This document shows, one piece after another, positions 10,037 to 64,000 of a DNA stretch of 64,000 bases. The notes beneath the pieces are model-generated. The model did not search any database. It was not told the origin of the DNA and saw only the letters and a list, made by a program, of their open reading frames with translations. The position numbers and the translations under genes were made by a program. The DNA comes from Podarcis bocagei (lineage: Eukaryota), in NCBI GenBank assembly GCA_964188305.1, contig OZ076886.1; one strand, 5' to 3'. The first letter of the stretch is position 1. Every line of letters starts with the position of its first letter.

Positions 10037-10665
10037 CTACCCAGTGAGCTCCAAAGGTAGCTCTCGACCACATAAGATCTCCCACTGCCTAGCAAGGAGA
10101 GATATTAGTTTCTCGCGGCTTTCTGGACTTGGGATGAAGACACACCACAGGACCTCTCGACTGCTGCTGCCTTCCTGGGTGACCTGTCCTTTAGGAAAAC
10201 TGAGGACATTGTCAAAGTGATCAAGGGTCAGGTTCTGCATGAGATCTTGATTCTGAATGTCATCAAAAACAAACGTGAGCGCCTGCGGATACGTCTGATA
10301 TCCCATGAGCACTCTGTCTAAATCACGGATCCTTCTTCCATCTGCAAGTTGATACTTGTCTTTCTTTGGCGGTTCTTTAGCAAATTCAGGAAGTGGATAA
10401 CTGATGTAATCCTCATTGAAAAGAAACATATCCGAGCTAGTTAAGATCAGCGTTTTAGGTTGAAGTGAGCTGTTGGATTGAGCAGTCCCTTCTGTAGCAT
10501 TCACTTGAAACACTAGCACATAGAGAAGTATATTCAGAGACTGGAAGTTAATCACACAGTTCATCTTCTCTGCTACTAGAAAGGCAAGGTCCCCAATTTC
10601 TTCTTCATTGGGATATATGAACTTCACTCTACTAGAATGAATCAGTTCATAATTCTCCATTTTCC
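10037..10665 (-). CDS. NISCH: NISCH terminal coding exon 21
   Basis: Acceptor tacag|GG, then [16 protein letters not shown]...ELPLELTG and a TAG stop at 10037-10039. Confidence 0.95.
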
Positions 10666-13600
10666 CTGTAAGCAGAAATACACAATTTATAGTCTGCACT
10701 TATTAAAATAATTCTACCAAGGAAGCAACTAAAAAGTTAGGCTAAAACTCACACAGCATGTTTTTATCTGTAATATTAACAGCAGGCTTTCAAACTGAAG
10801 CTTGGAGTGATAAGTGGATACTCTGGCAAATATTAAAATAGGCAGCAGTGAACTAGAAGTCACTGATTCAAATCTCACCTCTGCCATGCATTCATTAGAT
10901 GTCTTAGGCAAGTCATTCCCTCTCAGCCTCAGTCCCCCACATGTAATATGATGGTAATCACATCAAGCAGGCCAGTACTATTTTAAGGATCATTGAAATA
11001 ATGTATGCGAAGCACTTTGAACATACTAAATTACATCACTTTTAAATATTGCAGTTTAGTCCCTGCCCCTTTTTTCAAGATGCTTAGGGTAGTATACATG
11101 GTGATTCCCTTGCTCACTGTATCCTCATAGCAAGTCTGTGAGGTTAGACTGAAAGGTAGCAACTGGTTCAAGGCCACCCAGTGTGAGCTTCATGGCTGAG
11201 TGGGGATCTGATTTACAATTTTCCCAGGCCTAGTCAGACAAACTAAGCACACCGGCTCATGCTAAGCATCAATAAATTGTATATAACACTTTTTGAAAGA
11301 AGTTAACTGCTGATGGTAAACATTTTTGTTGGCCTAACTTTTCAACTTCCTCTTTCATTCTTGGAATTTACTCAGGAGGGGGTGCGGAAGAGTGCTAAAA
11401 ATGCAGTTGTCAGCATAATCCCATATACTCCCCTCTACCCCAGTATTTTTTGTGCTTTTCAGTTAAGTTCTATACTTGTTTAGCATTGCCAGAAACACTA
11501 TTCATACCCTCTACACATGCAAAGAAATCACATGGTGCAGGAGTCATGGGATTGTACTACTTCAGCCAGCAGGTGGGGGAAAGCTTCTTGCACATAGAAA
11601 AGTACTGCGTCAGAAGACTGGAATCCTTCCATCCTGTTAATTTTGTATATGTAATAAGTTGGGCTTTTTGCATGGCAGGGACGGAGAAAGAGGAAAATCT
11701 AAATGGGTACAGTGTTTAGATCAGCAAAAAGAAAAAGAAAACTCAGACAATTAAGGCTATTCATTTCCATCTGCTTTTGCATCTTCCCTTCTCTAATCCT
11801 CCAGACTCTTACCCAATCACAATTTATTTTCCTAAATCCTTAGAACAGGATTGCTACAAATGTTCTTCACCATGAGCTTAAATTTTGCTACCCCGACCCC
11901 CATTCTCTCAGTGACTCACATTAGAGGTAATTTTATGTACATGATGTACTGATGGGTGGAATACCCTTTTGTAGTTTAACATTAATACACCCGTATCTGT
12001 TCTTTTTAACTCTATTTTCATTCAGGTAAAGGAAAAGATTGACAACCAGTGCTTAATGAATACACCTGTTTAGGCTGAACTTCCATACTGATTTCAGCGT
12101 CACTGACTGCATTGCCCAAAGGATTCCCAGCTGAATTCTGATTTACTATAAGACAGGGATGATGTAACCAACAGGACAAATGGCTTAATATGTGGCAGGA
12201 GGTTGAGTTCTGAACCGGATTTTACAGTGAAGAACTAAATAGTTTGAATATTATTCACACTGGATTTTCAAAATTCAGATTTTCATGCTGCAATTGCTTG
12301 GATTTCATAGAATCATAGAGTTGGAAGAGACCACAAGGGCCATCGAGTCCAACCCCCTGCCAAGCAAATTAGGGACAAATTAAAACTGTATTGCGAAAGA
12401 AGGAAAGCTTTGTCAAAGCTACTGCTATGTAGGCATGCCAAGAGTTCAATCCCCTGGCTAAACAATTTGTGTCAATCTGAAGTCACCCCAGACTTACTGA
12501 GGAGCATCTGGCAGCTCTTTCTTCTCCAAGTCCACTGCACTCAGGCTACTCTCAGGAAAAGGAAGGGTACAACTGCATGCAAGAACTTGGGAAAGTACAA
12601 GCTGCCAGACCTCTCTAGGTAAGGAAAAGCGGGCCTGAAGTGAACCTGCCTACACATGTCAGAATACACTAGCTACCAAATGTAATGGCTTCACAGAAGA
12701 TTGAAAGCTTAGAATGGGCCTGTCTGCGGGAATTGTTCCACATTTGCCACACTTCATATTCAGGACTACAGCCTATATGTGTATACTTGAAAACCAGCAC
12801 CACTGAGTTCAAAGGGACTTACTCCCTAGTAATTGTGCATGGATTGAAGCCTGAGCCTACAATTCTAATAAAAGCTGCAGGTGTTTGCCTCCTTTTACAC
12901 ATATTTTTTTAACAAAGATCTATGAAATTTACTGATAAAGAGTTGTCTTCTCCTTGGTCTCAAATTACAAGTTCCATTATTGGCCAAATAATGTGCTAAA
13001 ACACACTGCATTTTCCTTAAAAGGAAGCATCTTAACACATATAATGCATATTGCATACTCTAGAACAGTATGGCAAAATATTCCTATTAAGTGAAACGTT
13101 TCCAAAAAAAATTACCTGTATTTTTCTTTCCAAATTCAGAGTAGAAGTCTTTGTCCACTGGCTCTGGGGATGGTGTCCTTGCCAGTAGTGAGAGCACTGC
13201 CATAAGGTGTTGAATAAAAGCATGAGTGCTATAACTGTCTCTGGTTAGACAAGTTAATATATGTTCAGCTGAACGCCCTGAAAACAAGACAGAATCAAAT
13301 GTGCTTCAAGTCCTATTACAATTTTGCAACATTTTGTGTAGGTTTCTTTCTGTTTAACAGAGGCTATATATAGTCTACTGGGCCAAATCTTAGGTTTTTA
13401 TTAGCAGGGTTTGTCTGTTTCCTTCCTAAACACTCAATACCAAACTTCTGATGAGCACTGCCCCACTGTACAGGCAATACAGCAACAATTCTTTGAAAAT
13501 CACACTTTTACCGGCAAGATGTCTCTACTAAAACTAGACATTTTCAGTAAAATGCACCAGTGTTTGAAAATGTGCAGAACTTTAGCTGTGCCAGTGCTAA

Positions 13601-16600
13601 ACTAATGCCAGGCATGCTATAGATAAATATCATTAACTGAGTATATAAGACCAAATGGTTATGATAAACTGGAACTACAGTATGCAAGACTAAATGGTTA
13701 TGATAAACTGGACTTACAGGCACTATCAGTGCACTGATACTTTTCAGGAACTTATGAGTTTGATGGTGGGAGGGGAAGAGAAGAAGGAAAGAGAAAGGGA
13801 AATGGAAAATAAATTTACTTACCAGCAAGTCGAAAATACTGATCAAAAAGTCCAATGTTCACTGAGTGGAGATCATTTAATTTTAGGACCAAGCAGTAAG
13901 AGAGATGGAAAGAACTGAATTCATAGTCCAATTGTCCATTGCTCCAAAAATCTGTTAAAATGATTATTGGATAGTATTTAAGAAATTTGGTAATTTTATG
14001 AGAAGAAATCTGAAGGTCGTTTTAAGATCTCAGAAGAGAAGGTTCACTAATCAGTGCAACTTTTTTTTTTTACAAAAAATAGAAATAACCCCCTACTAAA
14101 GGTGGAACTTTGTACTGCCCTAGCAAAAATGGGTTCCCTACCCATGTTTGCTGAGGTAATAGGAGTACAGTGGTACCTCGGGTTACAGACACTTCAGGTT
14201 ACATATGCTTCAGGTTACAGACTCTGCTAACCCAGAAATAGTACCTCGGGTTAAGAACTTTGCTTCAGGATGAGAACAGAAATCGCGCAGCAGTGGCGCG
14301 GCGGCGGCAGGAGGCCCCATTAGTTAAAGTGGTGCTTCAGGTTAAGAACAGTTTCAGGTTAAGAACAGACCTCCAGAATAAAGTACTTAACCTGAGGTAC
14401 CACTGTAATAGCATTTGTAAAGGAAAATAAACAAGCAGCAACCATAGATGCACTCCTTGCTCTCCTCTGCAGACCACTCCCCAATTATATTTTGCCCTTG
14501 CAGCTAGCTGCTGCTGCTAGTGGGGAGATAGCTGAATACAGTCTTGTGGGAAGGGTTATGGGGAGAATTCACAGCTCAGCAAACTTAAGAACTGTATTTC
14601 CACCTGCCAGTTCTCTTTTGCAAATGCCTCCTTATCCCCCCTGCATTAGCGTTACAAGAAAAACACACTGTTCTCAAACCTCCTTGCCTCATGGCATGCA
14701 GTTCCAAGAGTGGCCTTAAATAATTATTCAACATTGAAAAAAGGTAACAAGTCACCTTTTCGTATCTTTTAACCCCAATGCCATTTTTTTGCACTCGTGG
14801 AAAATCATGGCACACACAGAGCTTATTCTGGGGGAGCGGGTATCCTTCCAAAGGATACCACCCATTCTAATTCATTAGTCAAAATGGTTCATCATACAAT
14901 GAATGTCAAGAATACAGAAGTTGCTCCAATCTAAAATCACTTCTCCTTGAAAACATTATTAGAAGCCAGGGATTATATATTCTGCCTTACCGAAGTGGCG
15001 TTCATTAGAATGACTCACAGAATCGTCTAACAAGAAGTAAATAGCTTTAGTTGAGAGCAGAACACAAGCTGTCGCTTCCACATCAGGAGCTTTATAAAAC
15101 AGAACAGATGACCACATGAGATGCCTCAGCTCTTCGTTTTCCACCTAAAATATCGACAATGAAATTAATCAACTATTTTAAGTGTCTGGATGCAGTTTCG
15201 TCGTCAACAGTTATAAAATGCGAGTCCTTTCTAACCCACTTTACTAAATGTTCATATTCAATTGCTGGAGAGTATAGCTTCAGTTCAGGAAGAAATTCAC
15301 ACAATCGTAGAGTTGGAATGCCTGTTTGCCACTGGAAATCTCCCCTATTGATATAACAAACTGAGGACTGATTAAACATGTGGAGCAAGAATTCCTGTGG
15401 ATCCACATTTTCCTATTGTTTGTGGCTTTGGTTTGCATCCATCAGTATTATGAAATACTCTTTAACATCCAGAGTTTTTACCATTGGACCCAAGAGTGTT
15501 CCCATTTTCAGACTTTTAAAGTAACTGAGGTGCCCATTAGTTAATACATATACTGTACCAAAGTTTAGCTCTCACTATTGGTGGAAGCACAATAACAATT
15601 TTGATGCTGCTGTGATGAGTGAACCCAAATGGTCAAATCATCATCATCAACAACAACAGAATATTCACAACTGTTGAGAGTTCAAGGAGTTAGTTCTTTA
15701 AAATGCAACTTCTAAATATGATAAATTTATTATCCTTGCTGTTGTCTGGTCTATTTGATTTTAGATTTTAGAGCAATAAAAAATCCAATCTATTGCCATA
15801 TGACCTTATAATATTAATGATAGTAAAATCAGAAGTCATCAGCACTATTTCTATTATCATTTTCTCCCTCCACAGAAAAAACTATTATGTAAGACAAAAT
15901 GTATCCTGAACATACATTGCACATGAAAATTCATGCCACCATAAACCAGTTAGTTTTCAAGGTGCTAGAGGACAATTTAGCTTTTTTGCAGCAGAATAAT
16001 ATGGCTAGACTTCTGGAACTTCTACCATCAGGAATGTCCCTTCCCTGTGTATTGTACAATACCTCAGCAATGCTGCTGTGGAAAAATTCCATAATGGATT
16101 TTCCCTTTAGCCCAGCCACATACTGAAGAGATGAAGAAACTGGAAGGTGCACAGGTATTTGGTTCTCTTCAGTAATTTTCTGCACCAGAAATTCAGATGG
16201 ATACAGAGATGAGAATGGCAAATGTGGCTTGCATAAGCTGGGAACAAAGAGAGATGAATATACACTGTCAGAGGCAAACCCAAATGAATGAAACACAATT
16301 TCATTCAAACTTACAGACTCAGATTTGAAAGGAACCTTGGTGGTCAACTAGTCCAATTTCCTGCTTAGTGCAGGATGCAACTACAGACTCACAGAAATAT
16401 GATTGTCCCGCCTCTGCTTAAAATACTTCCTATCAAGATCTCAGGATCATGACCCTTAATCCAAGCTGAAAAGTTTATGTTAAAGGGTCCTAGGTGTCCT
16501 AGCTGATCACAGCTGAACAGGAGCCAACAGTGTGATGCAGTTGCTTAAAGACTAAACAAATCACAAGCTTACCCTTAAACCCATCCCTTTGCCTCCTGCA

Positions 16601-19600
16601 CTTTTATACGACTGACCATACATTAATTGTGCAGTTTTAACACCCTTACGCATTTTAGCTGTTTTACTTATTGGAACTCTTCCCAAGATGTACACCTCCT
16701 CTGTAATATTGTGCAGCATTTTGTAAACCACAAGAGACAGAGGTCATCAAACTGGCAATTTATAGAATACTCGTTGCTCAGTTCACCGCAAGCTTTCTTC
16801 ACGGACAAGAAGTTCTCACTAGCTCTTTTTCAGCACGTGATTACAACAGGGAGGAAGGTGACCAACTTGTTGGCCCGGTCCCCTCCACCACATTTCTGTC
16901 AATTAGCTCTGCAGCCCGCTATGCATTTGAGAGCTAAGTTCTGAACTGGGAGCCTGCCACACCAGAGTAGGCTCCCTGTGTGATTTAGATAGAAGCTTCA
17001 TCTTCCAGGAGTCTAAATCATACACAGAACTTGCACGAGTAGTAGAAGAGCAGCAGAAGTCCAGACCCCGGCATGCAGAAGGGGATGCAGCTGAAAAACA
17101 AAAATATGCCAGAAAGCTGGGACCTACAGGTTTGTTCCCATCCTCCCATACTGCAATTTTAAACACACATATATGGCTAAATTTTTGGAGATGGCTAGTA
17201 TTATAGCCACGCTGTGATGAGTGACATTCAAAACAGTTATCCTCACCTTGCAGTTTGGCCATGCCTCTTGGAGTCCCAGAGAGGGTTTCTTACAGATTCT
17301 GCTTTGAAAATAATTATAGTTTTGATGTCTTGTAAAAGTGTCCTCAGAAGACCGTAGATTCTTAGAAAACGGAATTTTTCATGAGGTAGGACAAATACAG
17401 CTGTGACGAATCTGTAGCCAACGAGCAATTCAAGCACGTGGCCATCTGAAAACGAACCTTCTTGCTGAATAGAATGGCTGGCAGGGTGCAAGAGAACAGA
17501 AGCCAGTGGAATCCTGCTCAGCTTGAATATGCTCCTTGCGTTGTCAGAGTCTATGTATTTACCTGGCAGTACATTAAAGTCAACTTGAACGATGTGTAGG
17601 TGTTGGGGTGTTAGAAATATCCAGCAGGGATGGAACATGCAGTGGCCCTCTTCGGCAGATTTATGAAATGTTGAATAAAGTGCAGAACAACCGACGTGTT
17701 TAGAGGAAGTTTTGCCATCACTGGCAGATTCTAGCTGACACAAGACTTTCTGAGCATCAGCTTTATTATGGCAGAAAAGGTAGGCAGGGAAACAACCCTT
17801 TATCTCTGTGTTTTCAGATGAAATGTGATAAAATCCCATAAGCTGGTAGACAAATTCTTGCAAACTTGCTTTGCCACAGTACAGTACAGAACTTGTTAAA
17901 GCAGGCATACAGCTCTGAGAGCGAGACATATGTAAACAGGAATAGAAATCTTGCAGATTCTGAGAGTCCGAAACAACAAACAAGCAGGTATCGCCATTAT
18001 TTACCTTGAGTGTCAAACATATTTCTGGTATTAAAAAGCCAAATTCTGTAAGGTCAGAATATGGAAAGCACAGTGCTAATTTCAAGGCAGAAAGAATATT
18101 CTGGCAGTTTCCTTTGGGATCTTGAGGGATTTCAAATACAGCTACCACACTATTGGTCAAAACCAAACAGGAAGCAAACTGCTTGAGTCCTTTATGAACC
18201 TGAATACAAAAGCTCCAGAGAACTTTGACTATGTCATCCGGCTCTGTTTTTGTGCTGTCAGAAGCTATTTGCACAATATCTGATGTAGGGATGAACTCAA
18301 ATACATTGTCCCCTTCATGAAGCCCCATTTCAAAATAGCCATCTTCAGTATCTGCAACTCTGGAATCACTCAAAAGGTTCCCTGTATTTTGAGTTTCCAC
18401 TGAGAAAGAGGGTGCACTTTCCACAGCATCTGCTATCAAAGCAGAGAGATGTTGCACAAAATCCTGATTTGTGGCAGTGTACGACATACAGGTGAAAGGC
18501 AGGATGACAGTATTAAGAGAGTTGGGCAAGGCATCAGGTTCTTCTTTTGAATGGCCCAAGCTTTATTAAAAAATAGAAAACTATATTAATCCAAGTTCAA
18601 AAATAATCATCCTATTTCCAAGTCTCACTCTGGTGTCTCTTCATTACTAAAATATTTAAAATACAAGTATATGTATTATTATTGATAATTATTATTATAT
18701 GTACTGAGGCAATGGCATTTGAGATAAAAGTAGACGGTTGCTGAACATAAGCACAGGTATGCATTCATTCAGCTGGTCCTTACAAACCATTTCGAGTGTG
18801 TACAGAGTCCATCCTGACCTCAACTTGCCCCATCTGCATTCTGTGGAACTGCTTCCTGTACTTCCTGTTTCACACTTCTGCTTTAAACAGGAAGTACAGG
18901 GAGCTCCCAGGGAGATGAACCCCCTTAAGTCTTCATAACTTTATTTCTCCTCTCTTTGCAGTGATCTCTAGCAGCTACAAGTTTTGAATGCATGCAAATG
19001 TTCAACAGGTATAAGTGGAAATCAAAATGAAACATCACTCTCACCACATGTGATGGGCATTTTCATATTTGTTGGAAGAGTCCAACTGAGAAGCAGGTAC
19101 CTTGAAAGAGAAGGGAATCGGAATAAGTAAGTCACACTCTGATGCATCTGTCAAGTTTGCCCCTGGTACTGCACAACTGAAGGGCAGTACGTTCTTGCGT
19201 TTGCCATCGGCCAGGGGACTAAGGGCCCCTGGGAGGCTGCTCCTACTGACTCCCAAGTAGAGAGTAATGGACAAGAGGGAGTTCAGACGGTCCCCATGCA
19301 TTGCATGCAGCTGCAGGGAGCTTGCTTTGCCAGTGCTTGCTGGAAAGAACACTTACAAGAACTTTGTAACTAAGAAGTTGGGGTCTCTTTGCTCCTCCCT
19401 TCCAATCACTTTTCTTTTTGTGTTTTTAAGATTGTAAGCCTGAATCATTGATTGCTTTAAGAGCAGGAAAAAATATTAAAGCGAAGAAACAAACATACAA
19501 AAGGAGACACAATAATCTAGTAAAATGTGGGCCTAGTCACATAACAACCTTAACATAGTTCAAAAGGTTAATATGGCTCAATAACTAGCTGAACTGTGGG

Positions 19601-23400: not shown

Positions 23401-26400
23401 GGAGCTGACAGGACGAGGCAGAGAAGGAGAGGGAGGATGTACAGAAAGAGAAGAACAGTTTGATTTTGAACTGGCAGCAGAAAGCTTGGGATCTTCAGGG
23501 ATCTGAGAAAGAAAAAATGAAGGGCTGGGAACAAAGGCTACAAAGCATCCCTATCTTGAATGAAAACAAAGACAGATTTGTTAGCAAGCAGTAGGGCTCT
23601 GATAAATTAGATAATTTTAAAACACAGCTTCTTCACCATAATACTGGATGTTGGCAATACTGCATTAACAGCACTTAAGATAAATTTAAAAAGTCAAGTG
23701 TATGAACACAAGCAAATTATCCACCTTTCAATGGACCAATTAACTTTAGTACCAGAAAGAAAACGTTAGGAATGTTTTCCCAAGAAACTCCAAAGTAAAA
23801 CCCAAGAGTGAGAAGAAACCCATCAGTAACTGTTTCTTCCTATGGGCAATATCCAACGTTACTCATACTCAAAGCAGACCTAGTGAAATTCAGGGATGCC
23901 AACAAGATTCCCTGTGTATGGAACACTGGATGTGGATTGGGCCCCCTGCATACACACAACATGAATGCAGCCTACTGAAAATAACTGCTGCTTATGTGTG
24001 TACATATATAAACTTAGCCTATCCTACCTCGCAGGGCTATTGCAAAGATAGAAAGGGTTGGGAGGGGAATGTACAAACCATGAGTTCCCGGGATGAAAAG
24101 CAAGATACAAATATGCAAAAAAAAAAAAGAAGAAGCAACCAATACTCTAAGCATGTGCAGTTTCACAACTCCCAAAAAACACAAAACATTTTGACAACCT
24201 CGAGGAACAAAAAAAACGTATCCATGTGTGCTAACAGTACAATACATAGGAATTCTAACTTGCTGAAGCTGTGATGTTCTGGATGATTTTATAGTTGTAC
24301 CTGCAGACTCATTTTGTATATTCTATATTGTTGTTTTATGGTTACTGTATATTAATAAGCAACAGCCCAGCCAAAACAAGCAGACCAGTTGTGGTTGCGT
24401 GGAGGGACGTGGAAAATCAGGAGGCAGGGGGGAAGAGAATGACAACGGCGACCTTGCCATATCACAATTTTTTCCCAGTAGAGAGTAGTTTGATGTGGGT
24501 TTTATAATATAACCAAGACCACAGCCTGCTGCACATGGAGGATCAATACTTCTTAGGGTTTAAAATAATATTTACCACTAAGCAGATAAATAAAAAACCT
24601 GTGTACTTTACATGTAGATCCCTAGAGATTTACATCCCACTGAAATATGTTTAATACCCATTGTTCAATATTTTTATTATTCTTTATTTGTATTTCATTT
24701 CCTAACCACCTTCATCTGTATAGATCACAGGGGCACTCCTTCATGTGTGTCGCTCCCAAGCCAGTCAAAGCTTTATACACCAATGTAAGCAACATGGTAG
24801 CCAATAGGCGCAAGTGAAGCTCCCAGAGAACTTGTGTTCTATGATTCATCCTTCTAGGAATAGCATGCAGCAAACCTGCTATGGCATTCTGCACCAGTGG
24901 CATATTCTGGATCAGATTCTGGGCAGCCCCACTATAATCTAGTTGTGCTACAAGTTGCAATATTGCATGCTGATCACATTCTACGAAAGTTTCCCATCTC
25001 CTCATAGCTGTGCCAGTGGGGCAGGAAATATGCAAGCCCTCAGGGAGTCATTCTCATAACTCTAAACCAGGATTTTGCATTATGTCCAAACACTATCAAG
25101 GAATGTCAGCGAAGTGAGGGAGAAGATATTGTCTAAATGGAAATTTCAGTATAGTGCACAAAGAAATGTCTTCAAACAGGCCACCACTTCCACATAATTT
25201 GATACATCATCTTGCCTCCTTCCTAAAAAAAGTTTAAAAGCATCCTATTGAACAGGTTTCATTATCCATCCATCTCTCACCTTTTTATCAGAGTTGTTCA
25301 TTCTGCATTTTGCATCTTTTGCTTTTTGAATAGCCTTCAACACTTCCACAGTGTCAAGTTCTTTTTCAGTGGTCACAGTATAATCCAAACAGACCTGAAA
25401 AACCAAGGGACCAATCATAATAAATCTTCTACAATAAAGCAATTTGAATCCCATTAGCTTACCCAGACAATATTAAATCAATGCAAAAGTTAAAACAAAG
25501 CCTTTAGAACTCAAGTACATATAGACAGACATCTCAACTTAAGATTCCTGCTTATCATATGAACTACCAGTAGTTAAAATTGGCAAACCATATTTTAAAC
25601 ACTGGAATAGCTAGCCCAGTACTGTCAATCCTGAGTGGTAGCACCTTTTTAAAGTCTCTCACACAGGTCTCTCCTACCACTGCTACTTGATAGTATAGTT
25701 AATTGGAGATACTGGGGATTGAATTTAGGACCTTTTTCATGAAAAGCTTGGGCTCTATCACTAAATTTTCATGTTGTGGGTCCTACTCGTTTTATCAAGA
25801 AATTTTATCATATGTGTCAGGGGTTCAGGAGCAGAGGCGAGGGCAAGGGAGGAAACAGAGAGCGAGGGGGAGGAGGCAGAGGAAAAGATGAGTGATGACG
25901 ACGACCCGAGATCTCCGAGTCTTTCCAGTGAATCAGAAGATTCACAGAAAGGAGCACCAGTGGCCAGAACAAGGGGGGAACCTAGGGGGACACCCCAGGA
26001 AGAAGGGTCCAGAGGGGGCTCAGAGGGGAGCAGTTGGAAATCGGGACCAGCGTCACCAACAGAGAGCAGGGGAGAAGAAGGGCGCCAGGTATCAAGCGCT
26101 GGCAGCTCGCAACAGGAGGGAGGGCACGAGTCAGGAGTAGCCACACCTCCATCAGGGAGCGAAGAAACGGTCAGGAGGAAAGTGGAAGGTTGGGCGCGCG
26201 CGCCAAGTTCAAATACACAGGAAGGTGGCGCAGTAAGCAGCCCGGAAAGGGAGCCAGGTCCTAAAGCCCGGCGCAAGGAGACAGGAGGGTCCGGGGGGTC
26301 CGCGTCAGAAGAATCCCGGAAGGAAGAGACCACGGGGGGCAGAGGGACCCAGAGAAGAACGGTCAGGCGGAAAAGGTGGAGTAAGACTAGGTTAGTAAGC

Positions 26401-29400
26401 TGGTGCACAGGGGGCGGAGACTCAGACGGAGCTTCGCCGGTCTAACCCATAAGACGTAGAGCTGCACGCAGCAGCTTGAGAATGGAAACTGTAACTCAAT
26501 AAAGACTTTTATAAAGTGAACGCTGGCTAGCGTGATCCTCTGTGAGCTAGGATCCGGAAGCAGCTCTGACAATATGTCACACTGCTTCTCAAAAAAATGT
26601 GCTGCTTTCACACTGTATTATACAAAAGAAAATCCCATCAAATGTTAAGTATGAGAACATTTACCTCTGAGGCTCTGTCCCCAAACTGAGCTAGCACTTT
26701 GGTCCTGTAATCGGGAATAATACTCAAAGGATTGTTGGATAAGACAACTTTTTCCAAGCATGGAAGACCGCCTATATTCTTTATTTCATCAATCTGAAAA
26801 GCACAGGAATAAAAAATAAATTCTTCCATATATTATTTTCTGATTGCTCTCTTTATAGTGATAGGCTGCAGATTGTAACTCTAAAACAGTTTATTAAAAA
26901 TCCTATTCTGTGACAATAATAAATCAGAAGATATTTGCTGGTTCTGCACCAAAAGCGTGCGGATTTTTGACTATGAGGGGCTAGGGAGACTGGAGGAATG
27001 GGTGGAAACAGGACTGAAGATTCCATCCAAACAAAATGAGCTTTTTACAAAAGTAAGGAAGGAAGGGCATACATTTCAATAACATACAATAATAAAGAAA
27101 TAAATAAAGTGAAACAATACAACTGAAGTAAAATTAAAATTAAACATACTATGTACACAAAAGCTAATTTGGGTAGTTTCATTCAAAATCCCAGAAAATA
27201 GTTGATTATTGGGGATAGTAACATCCCTCCCATAAATTTTCCTTATTTTATTTTATTACATAATACAAATGTTTGAAAGATACAGGACACAAACAATGGC
27301 TTGTCTGTTTGACATCATGTGGTCCACAAATGAGTGGAGAAATTGCCATTGCAGAGAGATATAAGATGAGCTTTTTAGTAGACGGAAGCTACACAATAAG
27401 GTTAGAAATTTGCTCTCTTATTTAGAAGGGGGAAATAAAGATGCTCAGGATTCCATGGAGATGAACAGGAATCAGATTACACGATCTGCAGTATGAGACC
27501 ATGCTGATTTCTAGACCCCCAAAATAGTTACACATATTGTTTAACACTACTTTTTTCACTCAGTAAGACTTCTGAGTAAACATGTATATGATTGTGCTGC
27601 ATAATACCTGGTCCACTTTGTTGTTGCTAAGATCCAGGTTGACTAAAGAATAGAGTTTGTTGAGGCCATTAAGTCTTTCCAGATGATTCCCTGCTAAGTT
27701 CAGTGTTTTGATATTCCCAATTTTGGTATGAATGCCTTCTAGTGTTGCAAGTTTATTGTAGGATAGATCCAGATGAACGAGGTTGTACAGATGCTACAAC
27801 AGAAAACAAGCAGATTACATGTTAATTTAATAGCATTTGTGCCATAAATTGACACCCCGAGGCTTTATAAAGTTGCTATTCATACATAACAATTAAAGCG
27901 GTAATTCTATACGATTAACTTAATGGGCCTTATTTCTGAGCAGACATGCATACAATTGCAATGCTCACTTCCAAAATTGCACTGAAGACAGACTTACCAA
28001 GAGAAAGGTAATCAAGCAGGTTCAATATCAAAGCATAAGCAAACATTTAAGGAACTAAACAAAAATACACACTATAATATTACCAAAGATGTCAAAGCTA
28101 ACCTGTAAGTTTTCCACTAGTGGTACATCGTTGTGGCTTAAATCAAGAAATTCTATCTTCGGCATAAGTTTCTAAAACAAAGGAAGAGTAACCTTTCAGT
28201 GTGAATACTGAACACTGTTTGGAATCAGAACAACGACATGATTAGTGCTATGTTCCCAAAGGAATTTAGGAGTTCAATTTCTCAAGCAGAGCTCGAAGGC
28301 CACAAGGCACACCTCTTTTGAAAGTAAGGGAAATTTCAAAGCAGTTTGCAATATAGTATAGCTCTCTGCAGTTCAACGGGAAAATACAATTAGGCATGAT
28401 CTTTGGCAAAGGTGTTCAGAAGCCTTGACCATTTTATAGCATACTATGAAATGATCAAGGCTTTTGGGCATCCCTGACAATGTTCAAAAGCCTAGATCAT
28501 TTCACAATATGCTAGCATCAATAAGTGAAACACATATATCACTCACTTTCTTTTAAAATTTGTCTGAATACATTTTTTAAAATATGGTCTTACCACAGAT
28601 TCATCAATTTGAGCTATGCTGTTGTGACTCATATCTAAGGTTGTTAAAGTTCTCCATGTTGGAATAACTGCGGTCACGGGACAACTGGAAGGTGCACCCT
28701 CTGGCTCCCACTGGTCAAATTCATAGGCCTCAGGAACTAGGACCTCCTGTTCAAAACACAGAGGAGAAGGTTGAATGAAATTCTTTTTATTTCGACTTTT
28801 CTCCCTCCCCCAAAGAAGTTTTAGCCTTGTAAACCATTTCCCCTCAAGAATTATTATATGCAGAGATAAATTAAGCCTACATTTTAAAAGCCTGAGTTGT
28901 AAGATATTTCACCCAGAGTATTGTATGCAGTCACACTGCATCACACTGATTTTGGTGGGGTTACAAGCATAAATGCTTAGGGCTGAGCTGTAAAACCATC
29001 TCAATAAGACATCTCACAAAAACATGCTTGCATTCATGCATTCAAATTCTGAATATAACTTTGTTACTTTGTGAACAGTCAAAAGCTGTAAACAACCGCC
29101 ACAATATAATTGCAAATGGTTAATGTTTCAGTCTTACCATCATTGATGTTGCTGAGAACTGAACACTCAGTGTAGCCAAAGTGTGCTTTGAGGAGGTCAG
29201 CCCTTTAATAACCTTTGCGCCACAGTGATTTATCTGTTTGTTTTTTTATCAAAAAGGATATATAAAGCAAAATGAAGATCATCAGAGAAAAGCAAAATTC
29301 CATTTTTTATTACTGTACTACTACAGCTACTCCTTTAGTTCTAGCACACCCAGTACCAATCTACCATGTTGGGATAAAATCAGCACCACAACATATAAAC

Positions 29401-46803: not shown

Positions 46804-55589
<8,786 letters not shown>

Positions 55590-55984: not shown

Positions 55985-56403
55985 ATTATTTTAAAACTAA
56001 AGTTGTTGTTGGTTTTGCAGAAGACTTTCACTGCCAAAAGGTGCTAGGGATGCTTGTCAACATTTCAGGTTTGGGTTTATACTGCAGTGTCCTCATCAAA
56101 CATGTTGTGTACTGTATTCTCTGAACATATTTTTGTCAAGGTCTGTTTCTTTATTTCAAGAATTTTTACCCAGCTCTTCAGCCAAAAACATTAGGTAGCA
56201 ATCCTCAATATACTCCTTTAGATGCTTGCGAAAAACTTTGATTTCACCAAGCGCAAGATTTAGTCATATGCATACAGTATTTGTTTTTAATATTTGCTGA
56301 TTTTATCTATTGATAATTGATGTATGTACACTGCTTAAAGGTGTATCATCATCATCGCCACTATCACCCTGTAAAAAAAAAAAAATGCTCCCAATGCAGC
56401 TTA

Positions 56404-56741
56404 AAAGGGTAAAGGGACCCCTGACCATTAGGTCCAGTCGTGGCCGACTTTGGGGTTGCGGCGCTCATCTCGCTTTATTGGCTGAGGGAGCCAGGTCATG
56501 TGGCCAGCATGACTAAGCCGCTTCTGGCGAACCAGAGCAGCACATGGAAACGCTGTTTACCTTCCTGGCGGAGCGGTACCTATTTATCTACTTGCACTTT
56601 GAAGTGCTTTTGAACTGCTAGGTTGGCAGGAGCAGGGACCGAGCAACGGGAGCTCACCCCGTCGCGGGGATTCGAACCGCTGACCTTCTGATCGGCAAGT
56701 CCTAGGTTCTGTGGTTTAGACCACAGCGCGAAGCGCGTCCC
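56404..56741 (-). mobile_element. Sauria SINE between TNNC1 and the opsin
   Basis: Reverse-complement SINE flanked by a 14-bp target-site duplication CCCAATGCAGCTTA (56390-56403 / 56742-56755). Confidence 0.88.
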
Positions 56742-58154
56742 CCCAATGCAGCTTACTGATCAATTAAAAAACACACACACCAGACAATTCTTGCTCTCAA
56801 GATTACAATCTAAAAGGCATGTGGCAACAGGAATAAGGAATGAGGAAGGAAGATGGGGGCGGGGGGAAGCAATCTCAAGCACCAAAGTTATAGCTCTAAT
56901 AACAAGCAGCTGGGATGGAAGTGTTCAGTCAGAGTGAATGAAAGGCTGCTGCTAAGTGACAATTGACTATCCGTCAAAGGCAGCTGGTTTCTCAGCAGAG
57001 TTGGCTGGATAGGCCACCTTCCCTGCTTTGCCTTCTGTTCTGCAGCCTGGTGAAATGGACTGCATGATCTGAGATTCTTAGGATGCCCAATTTTTCACCT
57101 TCTATTAGCTTCTGCACCCAAGCTGGCTATTAACATACTTTCAGAAATGTAACACTGGAAGACTTTTATTTATTAGAGCAGAGAGCATTTCTTCAGATGC
57201 TTAAAAGATACTGATCCATGGGTTGTTTCGACTCTTAGGTTTTGAGGAGCCCCTGAGCCAAGGAGTCCTTGGTGCGCTTGACCTCCTCTGCCATGTGCTC
57301 CTCCTGCCAACTTGTTTGGACTCTTTTTCCAGCTACAATCTGCACAATTGCCCAGAGGGAGTTGCTGCTCCATCGCCTCGCCCTTGTCATTTATTGCACG
57401 CTCAGAGGGCAGGTGAGCAGGCAGCAATAGCAAGGGGTTGGAGCAGCAAGGGGCTGCAGAGAATGGCAGTGGGCCCACTTCAGGGGCAAGTGCCCAATGA
57501 CCGCCCCCTCCAGTGCCATTCCTGTGAGTGGGACTCTGGTGGCAGAGTGGAGATGGAAGACTCAGTTCACACTTCCCAGCACTGCTACTCTCCAGAGTGG
57601 CATATATTTGTGTTTAGTTACATATGATCTTAACATCTATATTTCAGGGTTGTTTGTCTGTCACTATCACTTCCAAAGCAGAGCATATTAACAAGAGGTT
57701 TATCTTCTTTCAAAGCAAGAGCTGGTATTCTGGAGAAAAAGATGACAGACATAAAAGACTGATAGGTTCTTCTACCCATTTCCCAGACCTAGAGCAGACT
57801 GCATAACTACCATTCTCATGGGCTTCAAAGCAACTCACAATTATTTATCATTTATCTAGATCCGAAATGACAACAAGCACAAAAGATGAGTGCTACACTG
57901 CAGAGAGAGGCACTTCAGATACACAATTAAGTGGTTTCCAAGAGATGTGTTTTTCTAATAGTTTGGGCCCAGGGCTTTCAAACATGCTATATATTCATTC
58001 CCCAGGCATAAAAACAAGAATGGATTCAAACCCAAAAGGGATAATGTATTATTGCATCTTTCAGAGAGTGTCTTTTGTGAGAGACATAATAGGAGAATTA
58101 CGAGAGCTCATTATCCTTTGCACAGGGATCACTTCTTGCAAACAAAATGGAAAG

Positions 58155-58509
58155 ATGAATCATTCTCTGTTTTCCTCCAATGCTTCAACATCCCTTGGAC
58201 CGAATGTGACGTGTAACACCATCACCTGCTTGGATCAGGTCAGGGAAAGGAAATACAAGTTTGGTCTTGGGGTGCTTATGATCCTTGGCACGCTTCTGGG
58301 TATTTGGTTCAACGGAACCATCATTCTACTAACCATCAAGCACAAATTTCTCAGGGTTCCTATTAATTACGCTGTGGTGAACTTGTCGGTTGCAGACATG
58401 GGCAGTATAGTCATTGGACTCTGCCCCACGACGGATGCTAATCTGCATGGGTATTACTTTGAAAACAAGTCTTTCTGCATCTTCCAGGGCTTTTCCGTTG
58501 CTCTGTTCG
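58155..58509 (+). CDS. Opsin coding exon 1 (N-terminus, TM1, TM2, start of TM3)
   Basis: MNHSLFSSNASTSLGPNVTC... has three N-glycosylation sequons (NHS, NAS, NVT) and ends FCIFQGFSVALFG|gtaagt, at the intron-1 position typical of ciliary opsins. The start codon is inferred. Confidence 0.88.
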
Positions 58510-61502
58510 GTAAGTGATTCCAACCTACCCACTTATCTAGATTTATGTGTGTCATTGCTAATGGAAGTTCTGCTGCATACATAGTAGTCTATACATGCAT
58601 TTATACAACCCATGTTGCATGCACAGATAGAAATCTGTGGGGAATCACTGTCAGACATAGGATAATGTGAGCACAACTATAGTGAAGAAACAAATATTAA
58701 GTCAGAATGGAGATAATAATTGCTTGGGGTTTTTTCCTTGAATAAATTGATGGTGACAATCAGTTTGGGGCTTGGTCCAATTTGACATTTCAGATGGTTA
58801 AAAATAATATATATGTTGACCTTTCCAATTTCTAATTTGTATGTAAGTGGAATTTGAGGAATTCTCAGTATGTAAGTAAACATTTTGTTAAGCTCTGGTC
58901 ACTACAGTCTAGTGAAAATTTAACTCAGTACCTGAACTGCATATCATATATTAAGGGAAGGCATCTGAACTGGAAACCCACATCTGAACCATATTTGTGA
59001 ATCTTCAGGGAATTCAATATATAAGCTTCATCAACCACTGGAGTGAAAATTTGGACGGTTGCCTGGAAAGTTTTAAGTTAGTTATCACATAGATGGAAAG
59101 GTGGGAAGCTCACAGCACCCATCTCCTTCCTTTCTGCAGCCACCTCCTGGACATGCCTGCTAGTATGTGGATGTATGCTAGCTCAGAAGTAAAATGTCCT
59201 CTTGCTGTGGTGTGAGATGGAAAACAGGAGGGAGTCCCACCAAATGGGTGGGAAACCCCAGGCCCAGTGGTCATTCAACAGCAACCAAGCAAGCAAACCA
59301 CCCACCCACATATTCTTCAAACTCCTGTGGTTTCTCTTGTGGGGAGGCCTAGAATTTTACACTTTCTTCTCATTCTGGACAAGCTGCTAGCAGAGGCAGA
59401 TTTAGGGCAGCATGACAGGTTTCCCTGCACTGGATGCTGAGCTGTGTGTGTGTGTGCTGCAGGGTGTCACAACTATGATGTAGTGCACATGCAGAATAGA
59501 AGGCGAGAGGGGTGAGAGGGGTGAATTTTGGCCTTGCACAGGGTGCTGCTGAAATTTGAAAGACCAAGGCACATCCCTGTTGCTAGCTTTACAACCATTA
59601 CAGACACTCCAGAAAAGACCACCTAATGTGGTTTTCTCATTCAGGTTTATGAAGCATGATACTTTGTATGGTTAGGGTTGCTTCTTAAGCACCACCAAGA
59701 AACAGCAAATGTTTCAACAAGAAAAGGGAACAGAGCGCACAGATTTGCATAGAAGTTGCATATATGCTAATTTAGAAATAATTACAATACTTTATAGAAT
59801 TACATCTTACTGTATTGGGGTCGACTTTGATCAGGTGACCTGTGTGATTGTTCATTTGACTGTCTGGGGACTAACTGTTGATGGTCAACTTCAAGGTCTC
59901 TTTAAACTGGACTTGTCCTGGACAGCCCTTTGAACAGAGGATGCCTTTGCATAAAGGACTGTCCACTGTAAAATAGGGTACATGCAGACTGCTGGGTCCA
60001 CATTTCATCTCCATGGTGAGCTTATTAAGTGGTTTTGAGCAAGCAACTTGTTTCTCGGCCTCAGTCTGGGCCCTTTGTCTGCATCATCACCACCACCACC
60101 ACCAATATCAGTAGTAGTTCTCTTACTGTTTTTTATTACCTGCCCTTTACCAGCAGAGGCTGGGTTGCAACAATTTAAAATTCAGTATTAAAAACAGTTA
60201 AAACAAAGTGCAGTCGCAGGAACAGGGTGGATCCTGAAAACATGTATCTCAGGTGTCAAAGGCCGGAGGAAAGAAATGCATCTTCAGCATTTGCTGAAAG
60301 CTGTATTGTATAGGTTGCAGATGCACCTCTGTGGGAAGTGAATCCCACAATTTAGGGGCTGCCACAGAGAATGCCCTCCCCCAGGACACCCACCCCAACT
60401 TCTGAGGGTGGTAGAAGGCCCTTTCTTGGAATTTTCCCCTCAGCCTGCCTTATAAGGAAGTGAAATATTAGTGAAATAGTACTTGTGAAGTGATTTGAAC
60501 CCTGAAAGTTCTATACGAATGACAACAAGAATAATAATAGCAAAGGGTCCCTGTGGACCAGTCAGGAGGGCCTTGGAAAATGTCATTACCTCTTACACTT
60601 TATTTTCCTGAGTCCAGTGAGGCAAGAACCTGACCTAAATAAACATTAATTTCCTATACCAGGGTCACACCCACACCATACACACAAAGTCCATTGAAAG
60701 CATGTGGCTTCCCCCAAAGAAACATAAGAACTGTAGTTTGTCAAGGGTTCTGGAAACTGTAGTTCTCTGAGGGGTAAACTACTGTTCCCAGGATTCTTTG
60801 GGGGCAAGCCATGTGCTTTAAATGTATGGCATGGATGCAGGCCCGTTCAGACCTTGTCTGAGGCATGGGCTGAGAGTCTTGTTCTTGGTGTGACAGTGCA
60901 AGTCTGGAAGGCCCCTAGCTTGCTTAGCTCTCTGAAACCGGGGGCAAGTGTACCTGGCTGCCCCCCTCCCTCTGCAGCAGCCTGTGTGGATGTGACCTGA
61001 GTGGATGCTTACATGGCCAGCGAGGGAACGTGCTGGGAAAAGGGTTGGCAAGGCATCCTGCAGCCACTTTCATCTTTTGCCACCATTATGGCAGCATCCT
61101 AGCCAGGTTTCTGGAGAAGCTTTCCGCCCCCCTGAGAACAAGCGTGCATTAATCCTTCCTCTTCCCGCTGTAGGGCTGGTGGCCCTTTGGTCTGTTGTGG
61201 TGTGTGCTGTGGAGAGGTACCTGGTGGTTTGCAGGCCATTCAAAGGCATCCAGTTTGGGAAGAAGCATGCCCTCCTGGCGCTCCTGTTTACCTGGCTCTG
61301 GTGTATCATGTGGACTCTGCCACCGCTTTTTGGTTGGAGTAGCTATGATGTGGAAGGCATTGCCTCAAACTGCGCTCTGGCCTGGCACAGAGAAGACTGG
61401 AACAGCCGCAGTTACCACTTGTCTCTCTTCGTGTGGTGCTTCCTGCTTCCTTTGGCCCTTATTCTCTGGTCCTACGGCAAGCTCATTTACGTCCTCAAAC
61501 AG
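58155..61502 (+). CDS. Non-visual ciliary opsin of the parapinopsin/parietopsin-related group (lepidopsin / Q113-bistable opsin-like); exons 1-2 only, TM6-7 not found in window
   Basis: Exon 1 58155-58509 and exon 2 61174-61502 splice in phase 1. Colinear with bovine rhodopsin over TM2-TM3 and ECL2: LRVPINY, D83, C110, Q113, ERY, PPLFGWSSY, E181, C187. K296 is not visible. Confidence 0.9.
60662..60844. repeat. Palindromic MITE-like element in opsin intron 1
   Basis: Imperfect inverted arms (AAAGCATGTGGCTTCCCCCAAAGAA ... TTCTTTGGGGGCAAGCCATGTGCTTT) that could form a hairpin. Confidence 0.6.
61174..61502 (+). CDS. Opsin coding exon 2 (TM3 end, TM4, ECL2, TM5)
   Basis: Acceptor ccttcctcttcccgctgtag|GG; LVALWSVVVCAVERYLVVCRPF...WTLPPLFGWSSYDVEGIASNCALAW...CFLLPLALILWSYGKLIYVLKQ|gtgagt. 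Confidence 0.92.
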
Positions 61503-62572
61503 GTGAGTCGTCCTCAAACAGGTGAGTCACCCACCCTGCTTCTACATAGCTGAGGAAATCATTCACTAGTTCTGCTAAGGGTCTGGAGTGCATGTTCCAA
61601 AAGGGTTCTTGCAACTGATTTCCACAGTTTGGTAGTCTGAGGCCTAGAAGAAAAATGTCTGCTTTGTACCATACTCAGGACGCTTGCAGGCCCTTGCTAC
61701 TTTCAGGTTCGGTCACATACTGGTAAATTCAAGTTGTGCAAATAAAGCTGATTTGGAGCTCTGGCCCGACAAACCCACTCCCTCCCAAAACTAGTTGCAA
61801 TGAGGCAAGCAATGGGAAAATGCACTGCAAAGAGTGGGATAACTTTTGTTTGACGTAATACCATCTAACCTCCTGCAAGTAAATGGGGATGAAGGCTCAG
61901 TAAGTAGCTGGTGCTGTCTAACACCCCGCAAACTTTGTGCTAACAAATCGGGATGAAGGCTCTATAGACAGGTTGTCTTCTGATTGTTCCATTAGTAGTA
62001 TAAGCATTTCCGCTTCCCAGATGGAACAATCTAGCCTTCCCTTCCTTTACGCTTGTTCTCCCTGTCCAGAGTGGATTTGGGGGAAGAGGTGGGGGAAGTC
62101 CCATTATGGTATTGGGAGACCTTGCTCTGGCTTCAAGTTGCAGGACAGCTCAGTTAAATCCAGCCCTGAGTTTTTAAATGGAGGGTGAGGAACATTTTTT
62201 CAATCTGAGGGCTGCGTTCCTTCCCAGGCAACCTTCTTCCTTTCAAAGTACACACACACACAGAAAACCTTGCAAAGCCTTTCCATGCATTTAAATGGAG
62301 AGATATTTCAATGAGTTCAAAAAGTTTGTGAGCAGGGTTTGATGAGGCCCAAAGCTACTGAAGGTAATGGGGCCCTTATCTGGCTGTCCTTTGCCAACAA
62401 CAAATTGTCGCTGTTTTTTGTGTTGAATATATGCTATATGGTAATTTATGGACCTAATAGGTATCTAAAGCCATTTGCACGTAACAAAATATGTATTTTA
62501 TCAAAGTAATTGTTGAACTGAAATACAATTAAGAAGAAGTATATTAATAGTATATTATATAGTATATTAATA

Positions 62573-63290
62573 GGGACATGGGGGGCGCTGTGGTCTAAAC
62601 CACAGAGCCTAGGGCTTGCTGATCAGAAGGTCAGCAGTTCGAATCCCCGTGATGGGGTGAGCTCCCGTTGCTTGGTCCCTGCTCCTGCCAACCTAGCAGT
62701 TTGAAAGCACGCCAAAGTGCAAGTACAGTGGTGCCCCACAAGACGAATGCCTCGCAAGACGGAAAACCCGCTAGACAAAAGGGTTTTCCGTTTTTGAGCT
62801 GCTTCGCAAGACGATTTTCCCTATGGGCTTGCTTTGCAAGACGAAAACGTCTTGCGAGTGTTCCAATTTTTTCCCACTCCCCCCCTTTTTCTAAGCCGCT
62901 AAGCCGCTAATAGCCTTTTAGCCGCTAATCCGCTAAGCCTTTAATAGCTGCTAAGCCTTTAATAGCCGCTAAACCGCTAATAGCGCTAATCCGCTAAGCC
63001 GCTAATAGGGTTGCTTCGCAAGACGAAAAAACTGCTAGACGAAGAGACTCACGGAATGGATTAATTTCGTCTTGCGAGGCACCACTGTAGATAAATAGGT
63101 ACTGCTCTGGCGGGAAGGTAAACGGTGTTTCCGTGTGCTGCTCTGGTTCGCCAGAAGTGGCTTAGTCATGCTGGCCACATGGCCCGGAAGCTGTACGCCG
63201 GCTCCCTCGGCCAGTAAAGTGAGATGAGCGTCGCAACCCCAGAGTCGGCCACGACTGGACCTAATGGTCAGGGGTCCCTTTACCTTTACC
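62573..63290 (+). mobile_element. Sauria SINE interrupted by a MITE
   Basis: tRNA-like head (GGCGCTGTGGTCTAAACC...GTTCGAATCCC) and (ACCTTT)n tail; the halves rejoin at AAGTGCAAGTA|GATAAATAGG. Confidence 0.85.
62726..63087. mobile_element. Tc1/mariner-type MITE, family C, inserted inside a Sauria SINE
   Basis: TIRs CAGTGGTGCC...GGCACCACTG with TA duplication, repeated GCAAGACG subterminal motifs and an internal GCCGCTAA-type array. Confidence 0.85.
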
Positions 63291-64000
63291 CATATCAATA
63301 GTGAAATAATGATTAAGCTCTAACTTAAAATGATTTTTATTCATAACAAACTTAATAATGCAAACACATTTTTTTCCTTTAATTTTTTTGGGGGCCCCCA
63401 AGAGAGTGGAGCCCTAAGCTATAGCTTGTTTAGCTTATACGTAAATCCGGCACAAATTGTGAGCCTGGAGCTGAGTCTTCCACTGATATGAATGGAGACA
63501 GAACCTACTTGCATAGCAGTCCCTTTATGTATCTGAGCTCTGGATCAGATTAGGAACAGAGGAAGCTGCTTTACTCTGAGTCAGGTCATTGGTATCATCT
63601 AGCTCAGTACTGTCTACACTGATGGCAGCAACTCATTGATTTCAAGTGGGATCTTTCTTAGCCCTACCTGGAGCTGCTGGGGATTGAACCAGGGGCCTTC
63701 TCCATGCAGGGCAGGAGCTCTGCCACTGAGCCACAGATTTTAGGATCAGGCCAACACTGAAGAAATCTAGGCAAAATTCCATGATGTTTCAACTTATGTT
63801 TAAGTTGAAAAGCTGCATGTGGGTGGGTGTGAAATGGCAAAAGAAAAAGAAAGAAAGAGCAACAACCGATCGTTCAGTCTTGGGACGACAATACATACTT
63901 AGGCTCCAGTAACAACTGTCTGACCTTAAGGCATTTGAAGGAGGCATGTCTTTTGCACTAATATGACTTGCAGCTATTTATAGGCACATTATTTCAGGGC

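Follow-up and report, generated by a model that had tools for sequence, protein, structure and literature searches.

Which opsin does the gene just beyond the troponin C gene of the lizard Podarcis bocagei encode, and is that gene in working order? We analysed a stretch of 64,000 nucleotides (contig OZ076886.1), referred to here as the window. In it, two GT-AG-spliced exons on the plus strand encode 228 residues, from the N-terminus to TM5 of a ciliary-type opsin (Table 1). Exon 1 encodes the N-terminus, in which there are three N-x-S/T sites, and continues through TM1 and TM2 into TM3, where it supplies C110 and Q113; it ends within a phase-1 split codon for Gly121. Exon 2 supplies the remainder of TM3 (E134-R-Y), TM4, ECL2 with E181, N186 and C187, and then TM5. 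With a probability of about 0.93, the two exons are the first two of the four that make up the gene for lepidopsin (OPNLEP), alias Q113-bistable (QB) opsin, and form its 5' half.

Table 1. Features of the opsin locus in the window
Feature	Position	Strand	Remarks
NISCH (nischarin) exon, C-terminal PH domain	10037..10699	-	PF25625 PH_NISCH_C, E=5.7e-61
TNNC1 (cardiac/slow troponin C)	46804..55589	+	six exons: ~46804-46830, ~50403-50432, 51241-51390, 51934-52050, 53148-53282, 55557-55589 (stop 55587-55589)
Conserved block, ~115 bp, abutting the ATG on its 5' side	58039..58154	+	80% identity to Sceloporus
Lepidopsin/QB opsin exon 1 (probable assignment)	58155..58509	+	starts at ATG 58155; donor GT 58510-11
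Opsin intron 1	58510..61173	+	2,664 bp, GT...AG
Lepidopsin/QB opsin exon 2 (probable assignment)	61174..61502	+	acceptor AG 61172-73; donor GT 61503-04; phase 0 (...VLKQ)
19-bp exact tandem duplication over the exon-2/intron-2 junction	61491..61528	+	TRF: period 19, 2.1 copies, 100% match
Intron-2 conserved non-coding element, 5' half (~240 bp whole)	63900..64000	+	cut by window end

In the comparison with bovine rhodopsin, numbered as in 1f88, residues 38-116 of exon 1 aligned without gaps to residues 40-118, and exon 2 residues 2-109 aligned to residues 123-232 with one 2-residue gap after TM4/ECL2 (E=2e-27). In bovine numbering the window opsin has C110, Q113 (in the motif FCIFQGF), E134-R-Y, E181 and C187; a multiple alignment placed the same residues there. 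The Pfam family 7tm_1 (PF00001; cutoff 30.5 bits) matched exon 2 at 62.3 bits; exon 1 alone scored 20.2 bits, below the cutoff. The junctions of exons 1 and 2 matched those of Sceloporus base for base, with the donor and acceptor contexts kept. A preliminary description, made from the DNA letters, had read this region as two spliced exons for TM1-TM5 of a ciliary opsin, with Gln at site 113 and E181 retained. The exon borders, the rhodopsin alignment and Pfam agree with the first reading, and the bovine mapping and the multiple alignment with the second. Bovine rhodopsin (PDB 1F88) shares with the window opsin a seven-helix fold, ERY, E181 and the disulfide joining C110 to C187, and the rhodopsin intron after Gly121 matches intron 1 of the window opsin in position. 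Unlike the window opsin, bovine rhodopsin has an E113 counterion; it is monostable, and it has an intron between codons 177 and 178 that the window opsin lacks. Exon 2 here spans rhodopsin exons 2 and 3.

The closest relatives of the gene were found in other lacertids. The window was 97% identical in nucleotides to the P. muralis locus. Its protein was identical at 226 of 228 residues to P. muralis XP_028573285.2 (named "parapinopsin-like") and at 224 of 228 to the Zootoca orthologue, with exon 1 reaching 97-98% identity to both species and exon 2 reaching 99% to P. muralis. A search with exon 2 against 1.84 billion 50%-cluster representatives returned only the P. muralis protein below 1e-30; all others had at most 49% identity. 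A word-indexed full-length search with P0001 gave mostly VA opsins, and since neither parapinopsin nor parietopsin was among the matches, a two-sequence profile was used to fetch both. The 120 matches listed for the profile search included no lizard parietopsin, and parietopsin is represented here by teleosts and one frog.

In the maximum-likelihood tree, the window protein fell inside the lizard OPNLEP clade (support 100/100), the stem of which measured 1.5 substitutions per site. Parapinopsin (100/99), parietopsin (100/100), VA opsin, pinopsin and the visual opsins were each monophyletic and excluded it. The tree thus bears out the separate Q113/E181 lineage of pineal/parietal type that had been proposed beforehand; nesting in the parietopsin or parapinopsin clade, named in advance as the result that would speak against it, was not what the tree gave. 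In AU tests, a sister relationship of OPNLEP to parapinopsin was compatible with the data (p=0.61) and no worse than the free tree. Parapinopsin may well be the sister subfamily of lepidopsin; a sister relationship to parietopsin was not rejected either (p=0.16).

The identity of the gene is published. Two papers of 2025 describe it as lepidopsin (Romero & de Souza 2025, PMC12043008) and as Q113-bistable opsin (Gyoja et al. 2025, PMC11893379). It is a four-exon gene between TNNC1 and RPL29 with Q113 and E181, and lacertids including P. muralis are listed among its carriers (PMC12043008, PMC11893379). The preliminary description had suggested that the gene matches lepidopsin/QB opsin, and the same locus and the same residues in the two papers agree. 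It had also cautioned that the gene might be poorly characterised rather than undescribed, and this was correct: the gene has been described and its spectrum measured. The window opsin resembles published lepidopsin in its clade, in Q113, E181, C110, C187 and ERY, in its exon 1-2 borders, and in its neighbourhood of TNNC1 and NISCH. It is a real, already known gene, and the window adds one further orthologue, nothing different in kind.

Could the gene instead be a lizard parapinopsin, or a recent lizard-specific duplicate of parapinopsin? NCBI labels the orthologues "parapinopsin-like", the four-exon structure is common to both genes (PMC11893379), and the AU test did not reject joining the two clades. 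Parapinopsin also resembles lepidopsin as a UV-sensitive bistable pigment with E181, and in other vertebrates it is expressed in pineal and parietal tissue. However, a separate true parapinopsin is present in Podarcis (P0314), Pogona and Sphenodon, 69-71% identical to the frog protein. These parapinopsins have E113, with D/E-R-x in place of ERY, against Q113 in the window opsin; parapinopsins in general have E113 (or D113), mostly D-R-x with few E-R-x, and lie at another locus. Over exon 2, identity to parapinopsin was only ~40-45%, with about 42% for parapinopsin-type representatives, and the 100/99 parapinopsin clade excludes the window clade, which sits on the stem given above. Moreover, pseudogene remnants at the TNNC1-RPL29 locus are reported from turtles, coelacanth, gar and sturgeon (PMC12043008, PMC11893379), and the gene is therefore ancient and no recent duplicate. 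Membership in parapinopsin is refuted by the tree and by Q113, and we give this reading hardly any credence.

Parietopsin, the other vertebrate opsin with Q113 and E181, shares ERY and the motif FC-x-FQGF with the window opsin; E181 serves as its counterion, it is associated with the parietal eye, and the AU test did not reject its sister relationship to OPNLEP. Its clade nevertheless excludes the window protein, and its pocket signature is missing: the parietopsin residues N118, Q184, T185, S186 and S188 are A118, A184, S185, N186 and A188 in the window opsin, and at T269, a position outside the window, the orthologues have Ala. The parietopsin motifs given in the preliminary description (FAVNYFG and EGVQTSCS) agree with those of real parietopsins. 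The published lepidopsin pigment is UV-sensitive and bistable (PMC11893379), whereas parietopsin is green-sensitive (~522 nm). Clade placement and the missing signature residues refute parietopsin membership, and the probability that the gene is a parietopsin is close to nil.

The neighbourhood of the gene points to lepidopsin as well. As had been stated beforehand, the opsin lies directly downstream of TNNC1, which ends 2.6 kb before the opsin ATG on the same strand. TNNC1 was missed by a strict EF-hand regular expression but found with a loosened pattern and subsequent tblastn of fused public gene models. Its exon 5 matched cardiac/slow troponin C at E~1e-21, compared with ~1e-13 for fast troponin C. 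Beyond TNNC1 lies NISCH on the minus strand, head-to-head with TNNC1, a layout also seen in the Varanus locus (L007). Neither the large minus-strand ORF 17243-18559 nor the acidic ORFs at 25.8-26.4 kb matched a Pfam family; these are probably NISCH exons. The synteny check that had been proposed was carried out on seven other lizard loci (Sceloporus, P. muralis, P. lilfordi, Lacerta, Lerista, Phrynocephalus and Varanus), and the order TNNC1-opsin-RPL29 was recovered in all. RPL29 falls past the window end; in the P. lilfordi, Lerista and Varanus loci it lies downstream of the opsin on the minus strand.

Orthologous loci gave four tblastn blocks, of which the window holds exons 1-2. When the window was searched with the Zootoca protein by tblastn, no match appeared beyond 61535, and exons 3-4 are absent from it; exon 3 of P. 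muralis begins ~0.5 kb past the point matching the window end. Because K296, TM6-TM7 and the C-terminus fall outside the window, the intactness of the whole gene is judged from its relatives. Exons 3-4 were intact in all orthologues examined, and K296 was present in every one, lacertid and other. NPxxY was found in all except the Phrynocephalus model, which has His in the Y306 column. Exons 1-2 showed zero stops and zero indels across seven lizard species, and are under purifying selection: pairwise dN/dS was 0.11-0.30 overall, 0.25-0.30 within Podarcis and 0.11 against Lacerta. These ratios, together with the lack of indels and stops in the seven species, indicate a working gene.

The exon-2/intron-2 junction carries a 19-bp duplication that yields two identical donors, at GT 61503 and GT 61522, of which only the first keeps the frame. 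Among the loci compared, P. lilfordi also has it (19 bp), as does P. muralis with a second unit of 20 bp; Lacerta agilis and Sceloporus lack it, and it is Podarcis-specific. We found no mention of it in the searched passages of PMC12043008 and PMC11893379. Splicing at the second site could yield a share of frameshifted transcripts. The gene might be decaying or crippled in P. bocagei, with damaged 3' exons or a frameshifting donor, and yield no working pigment: exons 3-4 lie outside the window, the identical donors stand 19 nt apart, and the opsin is said to be very prone to loss (PMC12043008, PMC11893379). We consider this very unlikely. The duplication must be old, as it occurs in P. muralis and P. 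lilfordi too, and yet exons 1-4 are intact there and the RefSeq models splice at the first donor. Across the 684 nt of exons 1-2, 4 positions differ between P. bocagei and P. muralis, compared with a divergence of ~2.7% in the flanking DNA, and the dN/dS values above also argue against decay. Lacertids, moreover, possess the full set of five pineal opsins and a well-developed parietal eye.

Two non-coding blocks at the gene, the upstream block and the intron-2 element, were conserved over five lizard families. The upstream block aligned in eight lizard sequences and is non-coding, since its indels are not multiples of three. An A/T-rich, TATA-like stretch lies in it ~60 nt 5' of the ATG, and an upstream ORF of three codons (ATG 58147) ends in a stop that overlaps the main ATG. 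The block probably represents the core promoter together with the 5'UTR. When it was inspected by eye for canonical CRX/OTX sites (TAATCC), only near-matches were found. The intron-2 element was colinear in intron 2 of Sceloporus, Lerista, Varanus, Phrynocephalus, Lacerta and P. muralis, and contains an invariant MEF2-like motif, CTATTTATAG. It is a speculative and rather doubtful proposal that the two blocks drive lepidopsin in parietal-eye or pineal photoreceptors and that, separately, the duplicated donor causes partly unproductive splicing. If true, the regulatory module or the splicing effect would offer a handle on lepidopsin expression.

As a pigment, the complete protein, ~381 aa long in lacertids, would be a seven-helix ciliary-type opsin binding 11-cis-retinal through K296, which exon 3, just past the window, is expected to encode. 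Gln at position 113 means that the vertebrate E113 counterion is missing, and E181, from exon 2, probably acts as counterion in the protonated state; we infer this role for the window opsin too. The Anolis carolinensis orthologue, the only one with published measurements, is a UV-absorbing (~370 nm), photoreversible bistable pigment (PMC11893379). By analogy, the P. bocagei opsin would have the same photochemistry: a UV-absorbing dark state (~370 nm) would be converted by UV into a stable ~470 nm photoproduct and restored by visible light, and such conversion and reversal would make the pigment bistable. Expression of lepidopsin in parietal-eye or pineal photoreceptors is presumed here.

Among the opsin subfamilies of vertebrates, lepidopsin/QB opsin was the latest to be recognised. 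It is an ancient gene retained only in parietal-eyed lizards and the tuatara, and its UV-sensitive bistable pigment is of possible optogenetic use. A reading of the DNA alone recovered it at this locus. The window adds one intact-looking lacertid orthologue and leaves existing knowledge of the subfamily unchanged.

The N-terminal half of a ciliary-type opsin lies, under constraint, at the lepidopsin locus in the window (coordinates are listed in the table below). When exons 1 and 2 were joined, a stop-free translation of 228 residues was obtained; intron 1 is in phase 1 and interrupts a Gly codon, and exon 2 ends in phase 0. The contexts of the exon-1 donor, the exon-2 acceptor and the exon-2 donor were all kept in the orthologous locus of Sceloporus undulatus. 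The coordinates given in the preliminary description were correct.

Features of the NISCH-TNNC1-opsin region (window coordinates)
Feature	Position	Strand	Details
Nischarin (NISCH) C-terminal PH domain exon	10037-10699	-	E=5.7e-61
TNNC1 exon 5	53148-53282	+	cardiac/slow troponin C ~1e-21, against ~1e-13 for fast troponin C
TNNC1 stop codon	55587-55589	+	from tblastn mapping of the remaining exons
Block upstream of opsin ATG, ~115 bp	58039-58154		conserved in eight lizard sequences
Opsin exon 1	58155 (ATG)-58509	+	355 nt, then GTAAGT
Opsin intron 1	acceptor AG at 61172-73	+	2,664 bp
Opsin exon 2	61174-61502	+	329 nt, then GTGAGT
Exact 19-bp tandem repeat over exon-2 donor	61491-61528	+	two identical donors, 19 nt apart
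Intron-2 non-coding element, ~240 bp	63900-64000, runs past window end		conserved across lizard families; L002 (orthologous lizard locus): 15910-16145

When aligned to solved structures, exon 1 matched bovine rhodopsin residues 40-118 without gaps, and exon 2 matched residues 123-232 (E=2e-27) with a single 2-residue gap; exon 2 also passed the Pfam 7tm_1 threshold. The window opsin carries the disulfide cysteines Cys110 and Cys187, Gln113, Glu-Arg-Tyr at 134-136, and Glu181, and an alignment of 43 sequences agreed with that to rhodopsin. The reading of Gln113 in FCIFQGF with a kept Glu181 was right, as were the parietopsin motifs given for comparison, when set against real parietopsins. A signature of the second extracellular loop and retinal pocket (61345-61386 and orthologues) comprised D96, A184, S185 and A188, invariant in all seven aligned lepidopsins, and N186, present in six of the seven. 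Each of these differs from parapinopsin and/or parietopsin, A188 being common to lepidopsin and parapinopsin.

In a length-adjusted search, exon 1 matched lizard proteins only, the top match being a 381-aa 'parapinopsin-like' protein of Zootoca vivipara (97% identity). When 1.84 billion cluster representatives were scanned exhaustively with exon 2 in HMMER, only one scored below 1e-30, a protein of Podarcis muralis with 99% identity; all the remaining representatives were at most 49% identical. Within the lacertid cluster, P. muralis XP_028573285.2 shared 226 of 228 residues with the window protein. DNA identity to the window was 97% for the P. muralis locus, 93-95% for P. lilfordi and about 90-93% for Lacerta agilis, which marks the genome as that of a Podarcis-like lacertid.

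A maximum-likelihood tree (LG+C20+F+G4) was built with parapinopsin (including Podarcis, Pogona and Sphenodon), parietopsin, VA opsin, pinopsin, rhodopsin, cone opsins and a tunicate opsin as anchors, and TMT/Opn3/pteropsin as outgroups. The window opsin and the lizard proteins formed one clade (100/100), whose stem is long, at 1.5 substitutions per site. Monophyly to the exclusion of the window opsin was recovered for each of parapinopsin (100/99), parietopsin (100/100), VA opsin (100/100) and visual opsins (100/99), so that the separate lineage proposed earlier nested inside neither parapinopsin nor parietopsin. The branching order among the subfamilies was not resolved by this tree: a tree in which the lepidopsin clade was constrained to group with parapinopsin slightly outscored the unconstrained one (AU p=0.61), and one that grouped it with parietopsin scored lower but was not rejected (AU p=0.16).

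The gene order in the window is NISCH (-), TNNC1 (+), opsin (+), with 2.6 kb between the TNNC1 stop and the opsin ATG. Seven orthologous loci were fetched, and each gave four tblastn blocks for the opsin. TNNC1 lay upstream on the same strand in the Sceloporus, P. muralis, Lacerta and Lerista loci, P. lilfordi, Lerista and Varanus had RPL29 downstream on the minus strand, and Varanus had NISCH upstream, likewise on the minus strand. A minus-strand ORF of 438 aa (17243-18559) and an acidic, serine-rich ORF pair on both strands (25761-26445) had no Pfam match; given the NISCH PH exon at 10037-10699, they are probably large NISCH exons. SINE-like interspersed repeats with a tRNA-like head were seen between TNNC1 and the opsin (56300-56740) and in opsin intron 2 (62580-63290), and further copies of the former, about 87-88% identical, occur at other places in the P. 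muralis and P. lilfordi loci.

Exons 3 and 4 were not found within the window; alignment to P. muralis puts the start of exon 3 ~0.5 kb past position 64000. K296 and NPxxY, both beyond the window here, were present in every orthologue, bar one Y306H in the Phrynocephalus model. Across seven species, exons 1 and 2 were free of indels and stops, dN/dS in pairwise comparison with the window was 0.11-0.30, and only 4 of 684 exonic nucleotides differed from P. muralis, compared with ~2.7% of the surrounding DNA. This looks like a gene under purifying selection.

The duplicated exon-2 donor was also found in P. lilfordi (identical) and P. muralis (second copy of 20 bp), and a single copy in Lacerta agilis and Sceloporus; the duplication is hence genuine and belongs to the Podarcis lineage, rather than being an assembly error. 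The first donor alone is in frame with exon 3, and use of the second would cause a frameshift. The coding exons have remained undamaged ever since the duplication arose, which argues for use of the first.

Conservation of the intron-2 element extended over Lacertidae, Phrynosomatidae, Scincidae, Varanidae and, in part, Agamidae. Those of its motifs that are invariant, or nearly so, look like a MEF2 site (CTATTTATAG), an E-box (CAGCTG), an AP-1 site (TGACTCA) and an octamer (ATTTGCAT). The element could act as an enhancer, either for the opsin or for TNNC1, a muscle gene. The block upstream of the ATG contains, in seven of the eight lizard sequences, a 3-codon upstream ORF that begins with the ATG at 58147 and has its stop overlapping the main ATG. 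Its conserved CAG (58122-58124) is the acceptor chosen by gene predictors in TNNC1-opsin fusions. Such merged proteins, P0159 (Phrynocephalus forsythii) and P0161 (Varanus komodoensis) among the public models, are an annotation artefact, which nevertheless shows the adjacency of the two genes. Public annotation of the opsin is poor (P0159, P0161, P0345/P0347 of P. muralis, P0007, P0348): it is labelled 'parapinopsin-like', several Ensembl/UniProt models are mis-spliced, and the 418-aa P. muralis RefSeq model has its start placed 37 codons too far upstream, in a reading frame that stays open in the window as well, from 57867.

The identity with lepidopsin, or QB opsin, suggested in the preliminary description was supported, as precisely this gene is the subject of two papers from 2025. 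Romero & de Souza 2025 named it lepidopsin (OPNLEP), and reported 376-385 aa, four exons, Q113 and E181, TNNC1 and RPL29 as the flanking genes in every lepidosaur, remnants in snakes, turtles, crocodilians, coelacanth, gars, bowfin and sturgeons, and all five pineal opsins in lacertids, with P. muralis in their Figure 1 (PMC12043008). Gyoja et al. 2025 named it Q113-bistable (QB) opsin and showed the NT5DC2-STAB1-NISCH-TNNC1-QB-RPL29 block; their Anolis orthologue is a UV-sensitive bistable pigment absorbing at ~370 nm, which UV converts to ~470 nm and yellow light reverts (PMC11893379). A 2026 review repeats these two papers and adds no expression data.

In this Podarcis species, retinal would be linked via K296, the dark state would have an unprotonated Schiff base and so need no counterion, and Glu181 may stabilise the protonated 470-nm photoproduct. 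Expression in parietal-eye or pineal photoreceptors is suggested solely by the reported correlation of gene retention with possession of a parietal eye (PMC12043008). Since both 2025 papers describe the gene and lacertids are covered, it is already known, lizard family included; it belongs to a gene family that is still little studied.
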